Positions 5,068 to 29,893 of a DNA stretch of 64,000 bases are shown here, in pieces. Below the pieces are notes generated by a model. The model had not been told where the DNA came from, made no database searches, and saw only the letters and a program-made list of their open reading frames with translations. Made by a program: the position numbers and the translations under genes. The DNA is from Adineta vaga (lineage: Eukaryota > Animalia > Rotifera): NCBI GenBank assembly GCA_021613535.1, contig CP075492.1:4154001-4218000 (forward strand). The letters are read 5' to 3'. Within the stretch, counting starts at the first letter, position 1. Every line of letters starts with the position of its first letter.

Positions 5068-5923
5068 TCACTGGTTATACGAAACCCAACGATATTATAA
5101 TATTCCTAAAACTAAATTCATCTAACTATATTGTGTTATCTTTTCGAAAATATACTTTCCCACATATAGTTTCTTAAAAATCGTATGAATCGTACACATT
5201 CATAATTATCTATATTCGATTATAAAAGAAAAAAATTGACAATTTATTTCGTCAAACATTATTCAAGTAGAATAACAAACGATGAAACAACGTCTTGATT
5301 TCTTGTGATAATAGTAAATCTGTTTTTCTATTTCTATCTTAGATTATGGAAATAGTATGATCATACCGTTTTTGATTTGCTGACAAAAGTATCGATTACA
5401 AACGAAAGCTTTTTTTAGTCATCTTTTTCTTAGATAGAAACAAAGATATAATTCATAGGAAAATTTGTTTATAAGATGAAATTCTAATAATTATCAATCA
5501 GAATTACAAAGGCATCGTCATTCGTTTCATATATGATTAAGAAAATGTTATTTCTTCTACAGTTACTGTTTTCTTTCGATATTTCAAACAAGTATGAAAT
5601 TACCTTTTTTTTCTCCTTTTTCTGCTCAAACAGGTGACGTCATATCTTGCGTAAGTCTTATGTAAATCTCAAGAACTAGCAAAGTTAAGCAGAACATTAA
5701 TTAAATCCGCCATACTTTTCTTTTCGAACTTATAAATTCTCCACGCAACTGCTTTCGTTGTTAGATTATGTTTTGTGAGACATTACTCGGTAAACATTAT
5801 TTTTATTTTCGCTTGTCTTTCTTTTTTAAATAATGAAAGAGAACGATTATTGTCTATTCTTCTGACTTGTGAATACCTCTGAAAAATTTCTGTTAACAAT
5901 TTTATTCTAGATAGCTACTGATT

Positions 5924-8072
5924 ATGGCTAACACAGACGTTTTACCAGCGATACCAACTTCATTCATTTATGAAGCTTTGGTCGAACAAGTTCAAGCGAT
6001 ACAAAATCAAGCGATAGAATTTGAAAATATTCTTGCTGAACGATGGCAAAATAATAAAGATATGCGAAAAGAAGTCAAATGTCATTCATACACTTTTATC
6101 GATCCATATGGAAATGAAATGATCGAAGAACATATGGATCACGAAGCAACGAATAGTATCGTTCGAAAATTGAAGAAAAATTATGTACCAAAATATTTGA
6201 AAAATTGGATTCAAATTGGTATATTGAATGCAAATGGTTTATCTGCTCTCAATGATGGTGATCTGAAATCAACAGTATCAAATTATGTTGATGATTGTCA
6301 ATTTGTTGCCTTTGGAGAAATTAAAGTTTGGCTTGGACGTTATGACACTCTCTCACCACAGAAAATCGATGTTAAAGTTCGTCTAACAGATAATTTAGAA
6401 AAAATCCTATTTCGAATTAAAGAACAACATCAATTTACCAATATTGAATTACGATTAGGTGATATAGGTCAAACAGCTGTGCCAACTATAGAAAATTGGA
6501 ATGCTGGTGCAGCACTCAAATCAGAAGACACAATTTTATCTCGTCGAGTATATCAAGATAACTATATTATCATGGCTAAAATCATACAAGAAGCCAATGT
6601 AATTATCTTGTATATTTTTGAAAAAAAATTTCTTCTTCTTTGTATTAATCTAATCGTAGGCATCGAATTCAGATACTGCTTTTGATTTGTTTATTCAAAC
6701 TCTAACTGGGAAACAAGTTCAACTAATTGTTAGTCCTACAACAGATATAACGATGGTAAAAGAATTGATACAAACAAGGGAAGGTATTCCTCCAGATCAA
6801 CAACGTTTCATATATGCTGGCAAACAATTGGAGGATGATAGAAAATTATCAGACTATCATATTCCAAATGGAGCGGTCATTCATCTTGTGCTTCGTTTAC
6901 GAGGTGGAATGTATCATTTTACCAGTGGTCGACAAGATTTCAGTCAACTACCTAATGGATGTGGTAATGCTATTCAAAATGTTCTTACATTTGAAACGAA
7001 AGATATTGATGATATTCATCAATTATCATCGACTGATTTGCAAGAATTTGTCATGCAAGCAAATCTTCTACTAACATCTTTACATCGCAAAACGAAAGAG
7101 ATTTATATAGCACGTAATCTTCCAGATTTGAAAGCTATGATCTTACCAACACCTGTCGATGATGCAGAAGACAGTGAAGGTGAAGATGATGATGATGAGA
7201 ATACTTCTAATGATCAATGACTATTATTATCACAAAAACAACTTCGAGTCTATCGATTATTAGAACGTCACATCCTCAAAGATCTACTCATCAAAGAAGA
7301 ACAACTAAGACTCTCTCCACAAACACAACAACTATTATCATCCATTCAAGATCGAACCGATATTGATTGGATGGACGTCATTGCTGATCTACAAACCAAT
7401 TTGATCAAAGAAGCTATTGGTCAAGATGCAAATGATCAAGAAATTCAACATGGTTTAAATATTTTGAGAAGTGCTCATCAAATCTATTCAAATGATGATG
7501 AATTTCATGATCTTTCTCTCTATGTTCGACATAATCGTGCACGACAAGGTCATCTCGAAGTTGGTGATCCATCACCTGATGTTCAACTACTGAATATGGA
7601 TCAACAATTTGTATCATTATTATCTCATTGTCATTCTCCTCATCGACCATTGTTAATCATTGCTGGCTCATATACATGACCTCCATTTCGTGGTGCTGTA
7701 CCACAACTTCATCAACTCATGGATATGTACAAAGATCGTGTTGATATGGTGACTGTCTATATCGAAGAAGCACATGCATCAGATGAATGGCCAATTGGCA
7801 GTCGAATCTGTTATGTTCAACCGAAAAGTGATGCTGATCGATTGAAGATTGCTACAGATTTCATCAAAGCAACCGATTATCGAATACCAATGTTGATCGA
7901 TCCAGTATCACTTGGTAATCCATTTAGTAAAGAATATAATCCATGGCCAATTCGATTTTATGTAGTGGATGGAATGAAACGATTGAGTTATATAGGTGCA
8001 CCGATTGAAGGATCATATCCATTGGAATTAATCAGAAATGCATTGGATGAAGCGATTCAACAATGTCAATAG
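5924..8072 (+). CDS. Ubiquitin-domain / iodothyronine-deiodinase-like selenoprotein fusion, copy A (exons 5924-6598, 6660-8072; in-frame TGA at 7218-7220 and 7677-7679; 695 aa if both are read through)
   Basis: After the phase-0 intron 6599-6659, ORFs 6687, 7371 and 7719 share one frame and are separated only by single TGA codons. Ubiquitin domain ends HLVLRLRGG. Deiodinase motifs [14 protein letters not shown] and [17 protein letters not shown] in the 3' UTR. Confidence 0.85.
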
Positions 8073-8135
8073 AGGGTGATTGTGTGATAGATATCGATGA
8101 TGATGATGATAAAATTGTGATACGTAAAACAATTA

Positions 8136-8186
8136 ATGATATTTTTCGTTGAAAGTATATAGCTAATATACAGACGATAAATTGAT
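8136..8186 (+). promoter_or_regulatory. Type II SECIS element, copy A
   Basis: AUGAU-AUUUUUCGUU-G-AAA-GUAUAU-AGCUA-AUAUAC-A-GACGAUAAAU-UGAU: UGAN/NGAN core, 10-bp helix II, unpaired AAA and apical mini-stem, about 65 nt after the stop codon. Confidence 0.9.
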
Positions 8187-9285
8187 CCAGCTCGTGTTTG
8201 CTTGTTACAATGTTATACATCATCGTTTTCGTTTTACTTTATTTAAGAATTATGAATAAAATTTATTTTCCTTTCCTATTTGAAAAGATCAAAATAATAA
8301 ACATATAGTACATGTGTAAAATTTCAAAATGTGATTCAGTTTGTGTCATTCGCACTAATTTAGTACAATAGGTAACTTGAAAAACAGTTATTGAAGTCAA
8401 TAATTTAATGCCGTAAAAATAATTATGGTTAGTTTAATCTTAAAAGTCTACTACTACAGTGATTTCATAATTCATATATTCCAAATACTCACATTGAGAA
8501 GCAAATTTCCAACGAAACAAGTAAACTTGTTTTTCTTCTTTTCATCACTTCTTCTGTATGTTATTCTACCAGCTACCTTAAAAAAACAAGCGATGTTTAA
8601 AATGTGCAGAATAGATTTGTACACATCGCAACTGAGTTTTAACTATTCGAAAAGAAAAAGAAGAACGAAAGAATCCATCGACATATAAAATGTTGTGTCT
8701 ACTCTGTAATGAAACAAAATAACAAAAAAACACTGAAAGTAAGTAATGTTTAATTTTTTTTTCTTTTGCTGCAGAACTTTTAATAGACTATTCCTCCAGA
8801 CAAGCGATTCCTTTCGCGGAAAGATGTAAATGATCTGAGCAATCGACTAAAATGTGTAGGAAACTGACTTCATTGAAGTTTGAAATATACAGACATATGA
8901 AGAACCTTCTCCAATTTATGATAATTAGGATGGAACCAGTTCATCCTTACCTTGCACATCAGCAGAGATGATCTTGAAAACATGATTTTTATATTTACTC
9001 GGTCTTGACATCACATACCTTTAAAAGACTTCTGAAAAAATTTGTGGGATTGACCGCACTCTTTTCTTTGCAAAAATGCAACTGATCGTGCATTTTGAGA
9101 TAGTTTATAAATTTTCTGATATCGAGGAGAAACAGGCGGATCTACCATTTTCCCGAATTTTACACAGTTTTCTCTTTTTCATTGATTCATGTTGATGAGT
9201 AAATCTATCGCTTTCTAAAATGACCCCTCTCTTTTGTAGAAGATCTATTCTACTTTATACATTCGAAAAACTTTTGAACACGAAC

Positions 9286-26807: not shown

Positions 26808-27665
26808 TTATTAAATATATATCAAGATAATAATCAATAACTTTCGAAATATCATTAGAATAAAATATATATTAATATTGTGGGTGTAGACCATCTGATA
26901 CCCTATAATCAGTATAGCGCATATGACTCTAGATGTCGATGATTGCTGAATGTGATCTGTATGTTATTACAAAGATATAATAAAGTCGTTCCTAATTTTA
27001 CTATAGAGAACAATTAGAAATGATAAATCTTGAGGGTGTGGGTATGATCGTAAACTCATTTTGATATAATTTTGATTCGTTCACCTTAACATATGTAATA
27101 AATTCATACCTATTAACAAAAGATAAAACAGTTGATTTCATCTCGTTTTCTTTTTTGTACATCGATGAGTAAGGACATTTTCAAAACTACGCATTTCAAT
27201 TTGAATTAATTAAACTTTGGAAATCAAATCTTCACAAACAAACGAAGATAATGTCGATGACATCGTTATAATACTTTCTATTAATCTAAAAGAAATCTTC
27301 CATTTTATCATTGACTCTTTATAATTTATTCGAGAATAATCGCTTGTGCATGTCTTGTGTGAGCGAATAAATTTTATAAACAAAACGATACCTCATGCTA
27401 ATCTCCTATATGTTAGTCTAAGTGAACAAACACTTTTCTAGTTGTGATTTAGAAGACTCTTTGATCAGTTTATTAGAATAATATGTAAAGAGAAACTTTG
27501 TCAATTATTAACTACAATAGCTCGATCAATAATATTGTTTTATTTTAATTGATCAATGACAAGTAATATAAAAAACAAAATTATAAAACAAGAGAACACA
27601 AATGAGTAAAATTTGTATGTGAAAGGGAATACTTGATATAATTGTGATATGAAAGAATATTATAC

Positions 27666-27714
27666 ATCAGTTTTTTGTCTGTACATTCTATATACTTTCA
27701 ACAAAAAACATCAT
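27666..27714 (-). promoter_or_regulatory. Type II SECIS element, copy B
   Basis: Minus strand AUGAU-GUUUUUUGUU-G-AAA-GUAUAU-AGA-AUGUAC-A-GACAAAAAAC-UGAU. Same fold as copy A with compensatory changes. Confidence 0.9.
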
Positions 27715-27745
27715 TTTACTTCTTTACATATCACAATCACTCTCT

Positions 27746-29893
27746 TTATTCACATTGCTGAATCGCCTCATCCAATGCATTTTTGATTAATTCTAATGGA
27801 TATGATCCTTGAATTGGTGTAGCTATATAACTCAATCGTTTCATTCGATCAACAACATAAAATCGAATTGGCCATGGATTATATTCTTTACTAAATGGAT
27901 TACCAAGTGATACTGGATCGATCAACATTGGTATTCGATAATCGGTTGCTTTGATGAAATCTGTAGCAATCTTCAATCGATCAGTATCACATTTGGGTTG
28001 AACATAACATATTCGACTACCGATTGGCCATTCATCAGATGCATGTGCTTCTTCGATATAGACAGTCACCATATCAACACGATCTTTGTACATATCCATG
28101 AGTTGATGAAGTTGTGGTACAGCACCACGAAATGGAGGTCATGTATATGAGCCAGCAATGATTAACAATGGTCGATGAGGAGAATGACAATGTGATAATA
28201 ATGATACAAATTGTTGATCCATATTCAGTAGTTGCACATCAGGTGATGGATCACCAACTTCGAGATGACCTTGTCGTGCACGATTATGTCGAACATAGAG
28301 AGAAAGATCATGAAATTCATCATCATTTGAATAGATTTGATGAGCACTTCTCAAAATATTTAAACCATGTTGAATTTCTTGATCAGTTGCATCTTGACCA
28401 ATAGCTTCTTTGATTAGATTTGTTTGAAGATCAGCAATAATATCCATCCAATCAATATCAGTTCGATCTTGAATAGATGCAAGAAGTTGTTGTATTTGTG
28501 GAGATAACCGTAATTGTTCTTCTTTGATAAGTAAATTTTTGAGGATGTCACGTTCTAATAATCGATAGACTCGAAGTTGTTTTTGTGTTGATAAAAGTCA
28601 TTGACCATTAGAAGTATTCTCATCATCATCATCTTCACCTTCGCTGTCTTCTGCATCATCGACAGGGGTTGGTAAGATCATAGCTTTCAAATTTGGAATA
28701 TCATTAGGAATATAAAATGCAGCGATTTCATTATATAAAGTTGAAAGAATAGTTTGTCCTTGCACAATAGTATCTTGTAATTCGAATGGTGATAATTGTT
28801 GACTACTATTTTTACAATTCAATTGAAATGCAAGTACTTTTTTAACAGCATCAACACTGGTAGCAGGAAACTCTCGAAAATCTTGTCGACCACTGGTAAA
28901 ATGATACATTCCGCCTCGTAATCGTAATACTAAATGTATTGTGCTTTCTTTTTTTATATTGTAGTCACCAAGAGTTCTGCCATCTTCTAATTGCGTTCCA
29001 TTGAATATTATACGTTGTTGATCAACACAAATACCTTCCACTTCTTCAATTAATTCTTTCACGCTTGGTACCTCCATTTGGCGGTTTACTTCAATGGTAA
29101 TTGTTTTTCCAGTGAGAGTTTTCACAAATAACTGGTAGCTCTCGTGAACATGAGGATCAGTCTATATAAAAGAAGCGAAATAAAATTAGATTAGATTATT
29201 AAGATATAAATCTTAGGTTACTTTTTTATTGTAAACTTTTGCCAATAGAACACAATTTTGTAGATAAACCTGACTTGACATGACTGTATCTTCACATTTT
29301 AATAATGTGCCTTCAGTCCAGTTTGTTGCATTTGGTGTTGCATTTTGTTCGATAGTCGATGATTTCAGCTGAATATCGGTAAACCGTCTTTGTTCTTTTA
29401 TCCTCTGTTGAATCTTTTCCATATTATCTGTTAATAATATATTAATAGTAATTTTTCGTGACAAAAATGATTCATGAGTTCCAATCCATACAGTTACTTC
29501 ACCATATGAAACAAATTGCTGGTTCGTTGTGTAGTTGGAAACAGATGATTTTAAATCACCTTCGTTCAATGGTACAATACTATTTTCATTTAAAATACCG
29601 ATCCGTATCCATGGTTGTAAATATTTCGGAACATAGTCTTTTTTATATTTTTTGATTATTTTCGTGATTGGTTCATGATCCATGTATTTATTCTTCATCA
29701 GATTTCCATATGGATCAATAAATGTTAATAAACGTGATTTTAATTCATTTTGTAGTCTTTTATCTGTTTGCCATTGATTATTAAGACGAGTTTCCATTTC
29801 AAGCATTTCATTTTGAATTGTTTGAACTTGAGAAACTAAATCTTCATAAATAAACGATGTTGCTGTCGGTATAACAACGGCAGCAGTCGCCAT
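27746..29893 (-). CDS. Ubiquitin-domain / deiodinase-like selenoprotein fusion, copy B (exons 29893-29222, 29161-27746; in-frame TGA at 28600-28598 and 28141-28139; 695 aa)
   Basis: Same architecture, intron position and UGA codon numbers (412, 565) as copy A, with its own SECIS. Confidence 0.85.

Follow-up and report, generated by a model that had tools for sequence, protein, structure and literature searches.

The iodothyronine deiodinases carry selenocysteine (Sec) in the sequence SxT-U-P[PS]F, which is followed by YIxEAHxxDxW. Natural ubiquitin fusion precursors, such as polyubiquitin, UBA52 and RPS27A, are cut by deubiquitinases at the junction between ubiquitin and its partner. More than one in-frame UGA can be served by a selenocysteine insertion sequence (SECIS) in the 3' untranslated region (3'UTR), as in human DIO2 and SELENOP. 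Salvatore et al. reportedly found in 1999 that the second UGA of human DIO2, near the C terminus, is read as Sec or as a stop. For SELENOP, the first UGA is described as a bottleneck, with UGA read as Sec or stop and isoforms that depend on the selenium supply (PMC5727441). Genes for Sec-containing deiodinases (DI), multi-copy and in many cases clustered, have been documented in invertebrates by a survey of metazoan selenoproteomes that leaves rotifers and ubiquitin unmentioned (PMC3473315). Here we describe a gene of the bdelloid rotifer Adineta vaga in which a deiodinase-like domain stands behind a ubiquitin domain and the frame is broken by two TGA codons. The gene (copy 1) lies together with an inverted paralog in a 64-kb window of the genome (contig C3:4154001-4218000; 100.8 Mb in six contigs), and positions given without a contig are those of the window. 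It is a real, expressed and mis-annotated selenoprotein gene. We put at roughly two in three the probability that one mRNA gives a soluble, polyprotein-like selenoprotein of 695 residues, in which UGA codon 565 would encode Sec and UGA codon 412 would be passed, both served by the same SECIS.

Four consecutive plus-strand open reading frames (ORFs) of copy 1 form a single frame of 695 codons followed by TAG once an intron is removed, as seen from the ORF listing and by direct reading. The only in-frame stops are the TGAs at codons 412 and 565 (UGA412 and UGA565; Table 1). The initial annotation had proposed this frame with a 61-nt intron; its coordinates are exact, and the intron is spliced in RNA contigs. 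The sequence GSYT-TGA-PPF and the downstream EAH..D.W segment on which it had relied are both read in copy 1, and its expectation that gene callers would split the gene is confirmed by fragments of ~410, ~120 and 117 residues in every sequenced bdelloid. Among named proteins, those of Adineta ricciae are the most similar, at 89% identity. Profile and homology searches used the separate pieces of the frame, unjoined, and codons were counted on the joined frame. Both TGAs, the frame and a SECIS in the 3'UTR recur in Adineta ricciae, A. steineri, Rotaria magnacalcarata, R. sordida, R. socialis and Didymodactylos carnosus, so that the conservation by which the annotation had wished its reading to be checked is found at the same codons across three genera.

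The residues after UGA565 match positions 115-234 of the PF00837 (T4_deiodinase) profile with 48.2 bits (cut-off 27; E 1.1e-12). The piece before UGA565, searched alone, gave no PF00837 match at E <= 0.1; with a natural read-through homologue as the query, it aligns to Dio2 and Dio3. As a proxy for the enzyme fold we used P0002, a natural homologue with W at the Sec position that is 79% identical over the C-terminal piece. Its sequence matches Dio2 (9h48) and Dio3 (4tr3) at ~1e-10, with GSYT-x-PPF lying on GSATCPPF and the downstream EAH..D.W segment aligned to YIDEAHPSDGW of 9h48 and the equivalent residues of 4tr3. The same two entries are the top two PDB matches of its AF2 model (pLDDT 75, pTM 0.77), with E ~1e-11 and TM 0.69-0.75. 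UGA565 aligns with the Cys that replaces Sec in the 9h48 and 4tr3 constructs and with a Cys of four Glomeromycota proteins. TGA is found at this codon in every intact bdelloid homologue fetched (A. ricciae, A. steineri, R. magnacalcarata, R. sordida, Rotaria sp., D. carnosus and two environmental contigs). This comparative evidence shows UGA565 as the predicted codon of the catalytic selenocysteine.

The C-terminal part is a member of the deiodinase family, a soluble relative without the N-terminal anchor. No transmembrane-like stretch was found in any piece (maximum 19-residue Kyte-Doolittle mean 0.84). In common with DIO1-3, the gene has the thioredoxin fold, S-x-T-U-P-P-F with Sec encoded by UGA, YI-x-EAH-x-SD-x-W and a SECIS in the 3'UTR. 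In contrast to them, the A. vaga protein has a long helical linker and ubiquitin-like domains instead of a membrane anchor, and Tyr rather than Cys or Ala at position -2 of the motif. The soluble deiodinase-like selenoenzyme behind a ubiquitin domain that had initially been proposed is thereby upheld by PF00837, PF00240, hydropathy, the SECIS and the Sec machinery. We know of no thyroid hormone system in bdelloids.

Two side observations concern the Sec position. One copy of Rotaria socialis (L032:596-2028) has TGG there and a stop within the MYHF motif, with UGA412 and the SECIS still present, and this copy is probably decaying. A W at the Sec position is also found in the database proteins P0002, P0007 and P0185, where it may represent TGA translated under another code.

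A SECIS with the layout AUGA, 10-bp helix, AAA, 5-bp mini-stem and UGAU is present in every homologous 3'UTR (12 sequences) and is conserved across Adineta, Rotaria and Didymodactylos. Over 15 pairs in these 12 sequences, 97% of cells are paired, compared with 41-62% when the partners are slid, and five pairs show compensatory changes (e.g. G-C/A-U 7:5 and U-A/C-G 7:5). A covariance model of our own, trained on orthologs from outside A. vaga only, found exactly two sites in the 64-kb window, at 74.9 and 56.9 bits; the next match scored 18.8 bits. The element of the paralog folds into helix 1, an internal loop, a 10-bp helix 2 and an apical mini-stem. The Sec machinery that the initial annotation had wished to see in the genome was found: tRNA-Sec with anticodon TCA (66.7 bits) on contig C2, SepSecS on contig C5, and SelD on contigs C6 and C3.

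RNA contigs of four public runs were placed on 5600-8600. A 677-nt contig (X1, X3) covers 6189-6598 joined to 6660-6926, and because it joins 6598 to 6660 it proves the splicing and shows that exon 1 and the ubiquitin domain belong to the same RNA. Overlapping or adjacent contigs extend from ~6000 to ~8330, both TGAs and the SECIS of copy 1 included, and run X1 alone covers 6189-8128. Contigs with the letters of copy 2 (the paralog) cross both TGAs ungapped (e.g. 7157-7780), copy-1-type coverage is found at 7222 in X1, and the RNA contigs contain no joint, variant letter or loose end at 7218-7220. Two ways of removing TGAs from the mRNA were considered and rejected. A hidden, frame-preserving intron of 69 nt over UGA412 (GT at 7180, AG at 7247-7248) is crossed unjoined by contigs 7157-7780 and 7120-7322. 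As for RNA editing of the TGAs, no variant letters are seen at 7218-7220 or 7677-7679 in the four runs.

The N-terminal half is built of ubiquitin-like (Ubl) units. Exon 1 has no Pfam match. Its AF2 model, made from an alignment of eight orthologs (pLDDT 72), contains a helix and two beta-grasp units, and the top Foldseek matches are linear di-ubiquitin, ISG15, the OASL di-Ubl and USP7 Ubl pairs (E 3.5e-7 to 1e-5). A feature search of the ESM Atlas gave weak leads (score <= 0.86), some of them USP7/USP Ubl families. Exon 1 models as a helix followed by a tandem di-Ubl. The canonical ubiquitin that comes next keeps I44, K48, H68, V70 and the LRLRGG tail; it is preceded by 234 residues, the helix and the two Ubl domains, and so does not stand at the N terminus of the precursor. 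As in polyubiquitin, UBA52 and RPS27A, the first Met of the partner follows immediately after a canonical ubiquitin whose LRLRGG is intact. The A. vaga protein differs from these in the helix and Ubl domains before the ubiquitin and in having an enzyme as the partner, and its cleavage is putative.

The 103-codon region after the GG matches no Pfam family at E <= 0.001. Its start is conserved as RGG-M-[YFL]-[HQ]-x-TSGR in bdelloids, Glomeromycota and the Sec-type homologue P0132, and RGG-M is retained in most bdelloid and all Glomeromycota homologues. In a deiodinase-like gene on contig C2, an upstream exon encodes MGMAHVTSGRTNF, and ubiquitin is missing ahead of it; the TSGR motif is thus part of the enzyme module rather than of ubiquitin.

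At codon 412, TGA is found in 10 of 12 bdelloid homologues from three genera, and TAA or TAG never; the other two have CGA (Arg) and AGC (Ser). The terminal stops of the orthologs vary, being TAA or TAG. The +4 base is C in 10/10 of the UGA412 homologues, and the preceding codon is CAA in 9/10. Across codons +1 to +50 the 12 sequences show a codon-position variation of 39:18:63 and no stop in frame 0, and the other frames are closed. The first AUG after UGA412 in A. vaga is at codon +51, yet QLRVYRLLE (+8 to +15) is conserved. In the 37%-identical C2 paralog and in the fungal proteins, the coding sequence continues from upstream into the helical linker with no UGA in between. Given the coding constraint, the absence of an AUG, the sense codons at 412 and the UGA-free relatives, UGA412 appears to be recoded and the downstream part translated from upstream; comparative evidence thus shows it as a codon that ribosomes are predicted to pass. 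We found no description of a second, non-catalytic UGA upstream of a deiodinase domain in the searchable literature. The additional UGAs of DIO2 and SELENOP differ in position: they belong to a C-terminal tail or to a domain rich in Sec, whereas that of A. vaga precedes the catalytic domain, in a linker at a domain boundary.

The ubiquitin junction and UGA412 vary together. All ten homologues with UGA412 have RGG-M. In two environmental bdelloid-like sequences (L030:255-989 and L031:733-1497) UGA412 is replaced by CGA and AGC, respectively, and the GG is lost (LIVRDE-M and LRLQSE-I). This suggests that UGA412 and the GG site may be linked, in a sample that is small and possibly a single lineage.

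Sequence 3' of UGA412 shows no conserved RNA structure: the RNAalifold consensus over 96 nt has an energy of -0.39 kcal/mol, and single-sequence z values are +0.1 to +2.2. The SECIS, ~910 nt downstream, is thus the one recoding element that is conserved on this mRNA. In eukaryotes, a SECIS in the 3'UTR directs Sec insertion at every in-frame UGA located at a sufficient distance upstream, and on these two grounds Sec is favoured at 412. Insertion of Sec by the same SECIS seems the likeliest decoding, although it may operate side by side with near-cognate readthrough. In the stretch 7242-7265 (LRVYRLLE) the nucleotides are near-invariant, synonymous sites included, and CGA encodes both Arg residues in this AT-rich genome; a search for RNA structure gave nothing that would explain this.

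Several points weigh against Sec at both codons of a single mRNA. The assignment of Sec, at 565 as at 412, is a prediction from comparison. The ubiquitin and deiodinase parts do not occur together on any single RNA contig; the assemblies break between them because the paralogs are near-identical there. One transcript for the whole gene is put forward as the simplest reading. Rfam at gathering thresholds gave no match over the window; SECIS_1 scored the element of the paralog at 23.2 bits (E 0.08) against a gathering threshold of 35 and left that of copy 1 unreported. An Rfam E-value scan of nine ortholog loci also gave no SECIS, and since the element is plainly present in these nine, the SECIS_1 model and its filters are insensitive to these AU-rich elements. 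UGA412 is replaced by codons for Arg and Ser, never for Cys, which gives no indication of a redox role at 412, and the CGA is also a plausible drift product of near-cognate readthrough. Lastly, UGA412 is followed by CUA in four homologues (UGA-CUA-G in A. ricciae) and stands in UGA-CAA-UCA, of the CAR-YYA type, in five. The contexts CAA-UGA-CUA(G) and CAA-UGA-CAA-UCA match classical SECIS-independent readthrough motifs (PMC4359377).

These last points bear on a reading in which Sec565 is as described and UGA412 is passed by SECIS-independent, near-cognate readthrough as Trp, Arg or Cys, with Sec there absent or rare. We consider this a serious rival, if rather unlikely, at about one chance in five. 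It accounts for the +4 C in all ten, the CAA at -1 in nine and the downstream codons, which together form high-readthrough contexts (PMC4359377), for the Arg codon in one homologue, and for the lack of a Cys replacement or a redox motif around the site. The likeness to known readthrough genes (AQP4 and LDHB with UGA-CUA-G, viral and yeast genes with CAR-YYA) extends to 9/10 homologues. Those genes, however, gain short C-terminal extensions past the natural end of the ORF, while here 283 further codons follow, with an enzyme domain, a Sec codon and a SECIS. Basal readthrough was ~0.6-2.3% in the mammalian cells tested (PMC4359377), which would make the enzyme a very minor product. No stimulatory stem-loop follows the codon. 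With a SECIS at ~910 nt, some insertion of Sec at UGA412 is generally to be expected by default. A weak termination context also favours Sec insertion, so that the context does not separate the two ways of decoding.

It is improbable that UGA412 is a genuine stop in practice, with a 411-residue Ubl-Ubl-Ub-X chain as the main product and the deiodinase part made rarely or by another route such as an internal transcript. Gene callers do end the gene at this codon, and RNA word depth over 6000-6900 is below that over 7115-8100. No weight was given to such differences in depth, since the 3' half carries the summed depth of two near-identical paralogs and the depth of contigs is no measure for ranking parts of a gene. 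Such a stop is difficult to reconcile with 50 following codons that are constrained as coding and offer no AUG to start from, with the absence of TAA and TAG at this codon and the weakest +4 base after every TGA, and with sense codons in two homologues. Nor is there a contig start, loose end or trans-splice site within 7221-7371, and all species retain an intact Sec codon, SECIS and domain downstream. That the frame is an artefact of decaying pseudogenes or assembly error, with the TGAs as nonsense mutations, is scarcely credible in spite of the decayed-looking R. socialis copy, given TGAs at the same codons in three genera, purifying selection over the whole frame, covariation in the SECIS, and a gene that is expressed and spliced. 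The frameshifts or differing stops that decay would bring to most orthologs are not observed.

The inverted paralog was described in the initial annotation as having the same length of 695 and the same UGA codons, and this is exact, with TGA at 412 and 565. The nucleotide identity of the two copies is 85-99% over 7124-8023 (against 27795-28690 of the minus strand), compared with 59-67% in the Ubl/ubiquitin half and 50-67% in the 3'UTR. In A. ricciae, two convergent copies ~13 kb apart share an identical 3' coding half, whereas in the N-terminal half one groups with A. vaga copy 1 and the other with copy 2. This pattern points to ongoing gene conversion, which homogenises the linker and the enzyme part. 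Because the tract covers both UGAs, the paralog does not count as independent support for them; that support comes from the other species.

Further whole-gene tandem copies adjoin those fetched from A. steineri (L035), R. sordida (L036), L030 and A. ricciae (L024). L035 and L036 each have two Sec sites and two SECIS elements per locus, and in L030 (1986-2213) a new N-terminal exon begins ~340 nt past the SECIS. The third A. ricciae copy (L024:1-742) is interrupted by an assembly gap. In A. vaga, a minus-strand gene lies just downstream of copy 1, where an RNA contig of X6 (8302-8543) skips a 54-nt CT..AC intron at 8439-8492.

Table 1. Positions of the features of copy 1 and of its inverted paralog in the window
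Feature	Position	Strand	Basis or remark
Exon 1, 225 codons: N-terminal helix, then two degenerate ubiquitin-like (beta-grasp) domains	5924-6598	+	ORF
Intron, GT..AG, 61 nt	6599-6659	+	Skipped exactly in RNA contigs of runs X1 and X3
Exon 2	6660-8072	+	In frame with exon 1; TAG stop at 8070-8072
Canonical ubiquitin domain ending LVLRLRGG, residues ~235-308	6687-6908	+	Pfam PF00240, E 1.6e-23, full-length profile
GG/M junction, candidate deubiquitinase site; downstream part begins MYHFTSGR	6903-6911	+	Sequence reading
103-codon region: conserved motif, helical stretch, acidic low-complexity linker	6909-7217	+	Kept in orthologs
UGA1, codon 412, predicted non-catalytic recoded stop in linker, context CAA-UGA-CUA	7218-7220	+	
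Helical linker (QLRVYRLLE...EEQLRLS...DIDWMD) and N-terminal half of deiodinase-like thioredoxin-fold domain, to GSYT	7221-7676	+	
UGA2, codon 565, predicted catalytic selenocysteine in GSYT-U-PPF	7677-7679	+	Alignment with Cys homologues
C-terminal half of deiodinase-like domain and TAG at 8070-8072	7680-8072	+	Pfam PF00837, E 1.1e-12
Type-2 SECIS, AUGA ... AAA ... UGAU	8130-8194	+	Covariance model, 56.9 bits, E 2.4e-9
Inverted paralog, layout as copy 1	27746-29893	-	ORFs, codon count; transcripts from variant letters and loose ends in RNA contigs
Paralog exon 1	29222-29893	-	
Paralog intron, 60 nt	29162-29221	-	
Paralog exon 2	27746-29161	-	TAA is codon 696
Paralog UGA1, codon 412	28598-28600	-	
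Paralog UGA2, codon 565	28139-28141	-	
Paralog SECIS	27658-27720	-	Own covariance model, 74.9 bits, E 3.7e-13

A search with the linker and the N-terminal half of the domain in a library of 1.84 billion proteins returned 563 relatives at E <= 1e-3. Among the best 149 family representatives, 113 end exactly at the Sec position. The helical-linker subtype is found in transcripts of Klebsormidium, Gefionella and Arcella, all cut at the Sec codon, and other relatives combine the Sec-type domain with ubiquitin, or have a SAM domain or an F-box. In P0173 and P0098, homologues from metagenomes or transcriptomes, an F-box or SAM domain takes the place of ubiquitin, and both end at the Sec codon; these domains are a second hint that the family may be tied to ubiquitin-ligase biology. 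As with the multi-copy DI selenoproteins of invertebrates, the A. vaga genome has at least seven further deiodinase-like loci (C2:6411874-6412629, minus strand, L021; C4:5684467; C5:8496407-8496925; C3:18462237; C3:17728476; C3:13840366; C3:16295834). The one on C2 has its TGA in SGSYS-TGA-PPL and carries the same helical linker.

Outside the bdelloids, the modules stand in the same sequence in Glomeromycota, where four polyubiquitin-ZZ-deiodinase proteins occur (Rhizophagus irregularis, 726 residues, UniRef A0A916ECT8 / POG81204.1; Ambispora; Cetraspora; Acaulospora). They are annotated as 'Iodothyronine deiodinase-domain-containing protein' or 'Ubiquitin C'. They share with the A. vaga protein the Ub/Ubl repeats, a last ubiquitin ending LRLRGG, the motif M-[LF]-Q-E-TSGR, the helical linker (EE..RR[FL]S ... 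DWMDV) and the deiodinase domain, with 39-42% identity over the linker and the N-terminal half of the domain. They differ in having Cys rather than Sec (GGSYTCPL[YF]), no UGA in the linker, an extra ZZ zinc finger and two to six canonical ubiquitin repeats. The statement in the initial annotation that no ubiquitin-deiodinase fusion had been described stands in so far as we found no paper that discusses one, but the architecture itself is already in public databases, in these Cys-containing proteins. Literature searches on bdelloid or rotifer deiodinases, ubiquitin-deiodinase fusions and fungal deiodinase-domain proteins returned nothing relevant.

In the preferred reading, in which Sec is inserted at both UGAs, a single mRNA would give a soluble, polyprotein-like selenoprotein of 695 residues. 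From the N terminus this would consist of the helix, two degenerate Ubl domains, ubiquitin ending in LRLRGG, MYHFTSGR with a short region, the acidic linker, the helical linker and the thioredoxin-fold domain of the deiodinase family. UGA565 would be read as the catalytic Sec, directed by the type-2 SECIS with tRNA-Sec, SepSecS and SelD. At UGA412, in the disordered linker, insertion of Sec by the same SECIS would compete with termination, so that two products may arise, a Ubl-Ubl-Ub-X chain of 411 residues on termination, e.g. when selenium is scarce, and the full enzyme. Stopping at UGA412 would avoid a half-folded enzyme truncated at UGA565. A putative deubiquitinase cut after GG308 would release a Ubl-Ubl-Ub moiety and an enzyme starting with Met-Tyr at M309. 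The chemistry expected of the enzyme is deiodinase- or peroxiredoxin-like, with attack of the selenolate on a halogenated or oxidised substrate.

A more elaborate scheme can be proposed tentatively, and we regard it as doubtful. UGA412 could be a selenium-gated decision point, where a Ubl-Ubl-ubiquitin released at GG/M would always be made and the enzyme only when the Sec machinery passes two UGAs; the released enzyme could carry a Met-hydrophobic N-degron that ties its lifetime to ubiquitin signalling. The residues after the GG are MY, MF or ML in all GG-bearing homologues. Such a coupled design fits with the loss of the GG in both homologues that lack UGA412 and with the F-box or ZZ domains carried by relatives in the family.

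The architecture is more ordinary than first thought, and the conserved upstream UGA is more interesting than usual. Selenoproteomes and catalogues of domain architectures miss the gene because it is split or truncated at UGA in all bdelloids sequenced, as are most members of the family across eukaryotes. The module order common to bdelloids and arbuscular mycorrhizal fungi, together with the F-box, SAM and ZZ relatives, points to a link between this enzyme family and ubiquitin signalling, which is a concrete handle on the role of deiodinase relatives outside vertebrates. UGA412, kept through the bdelloid radiation in a leaky context and with a SECIS on the same mRNA, offers a natural system in which Sec insertion, near-cognate readthrough and termination can be compared at one codon, and in which the idea of an upstream UGA as a selenium checkpoint can be tested.

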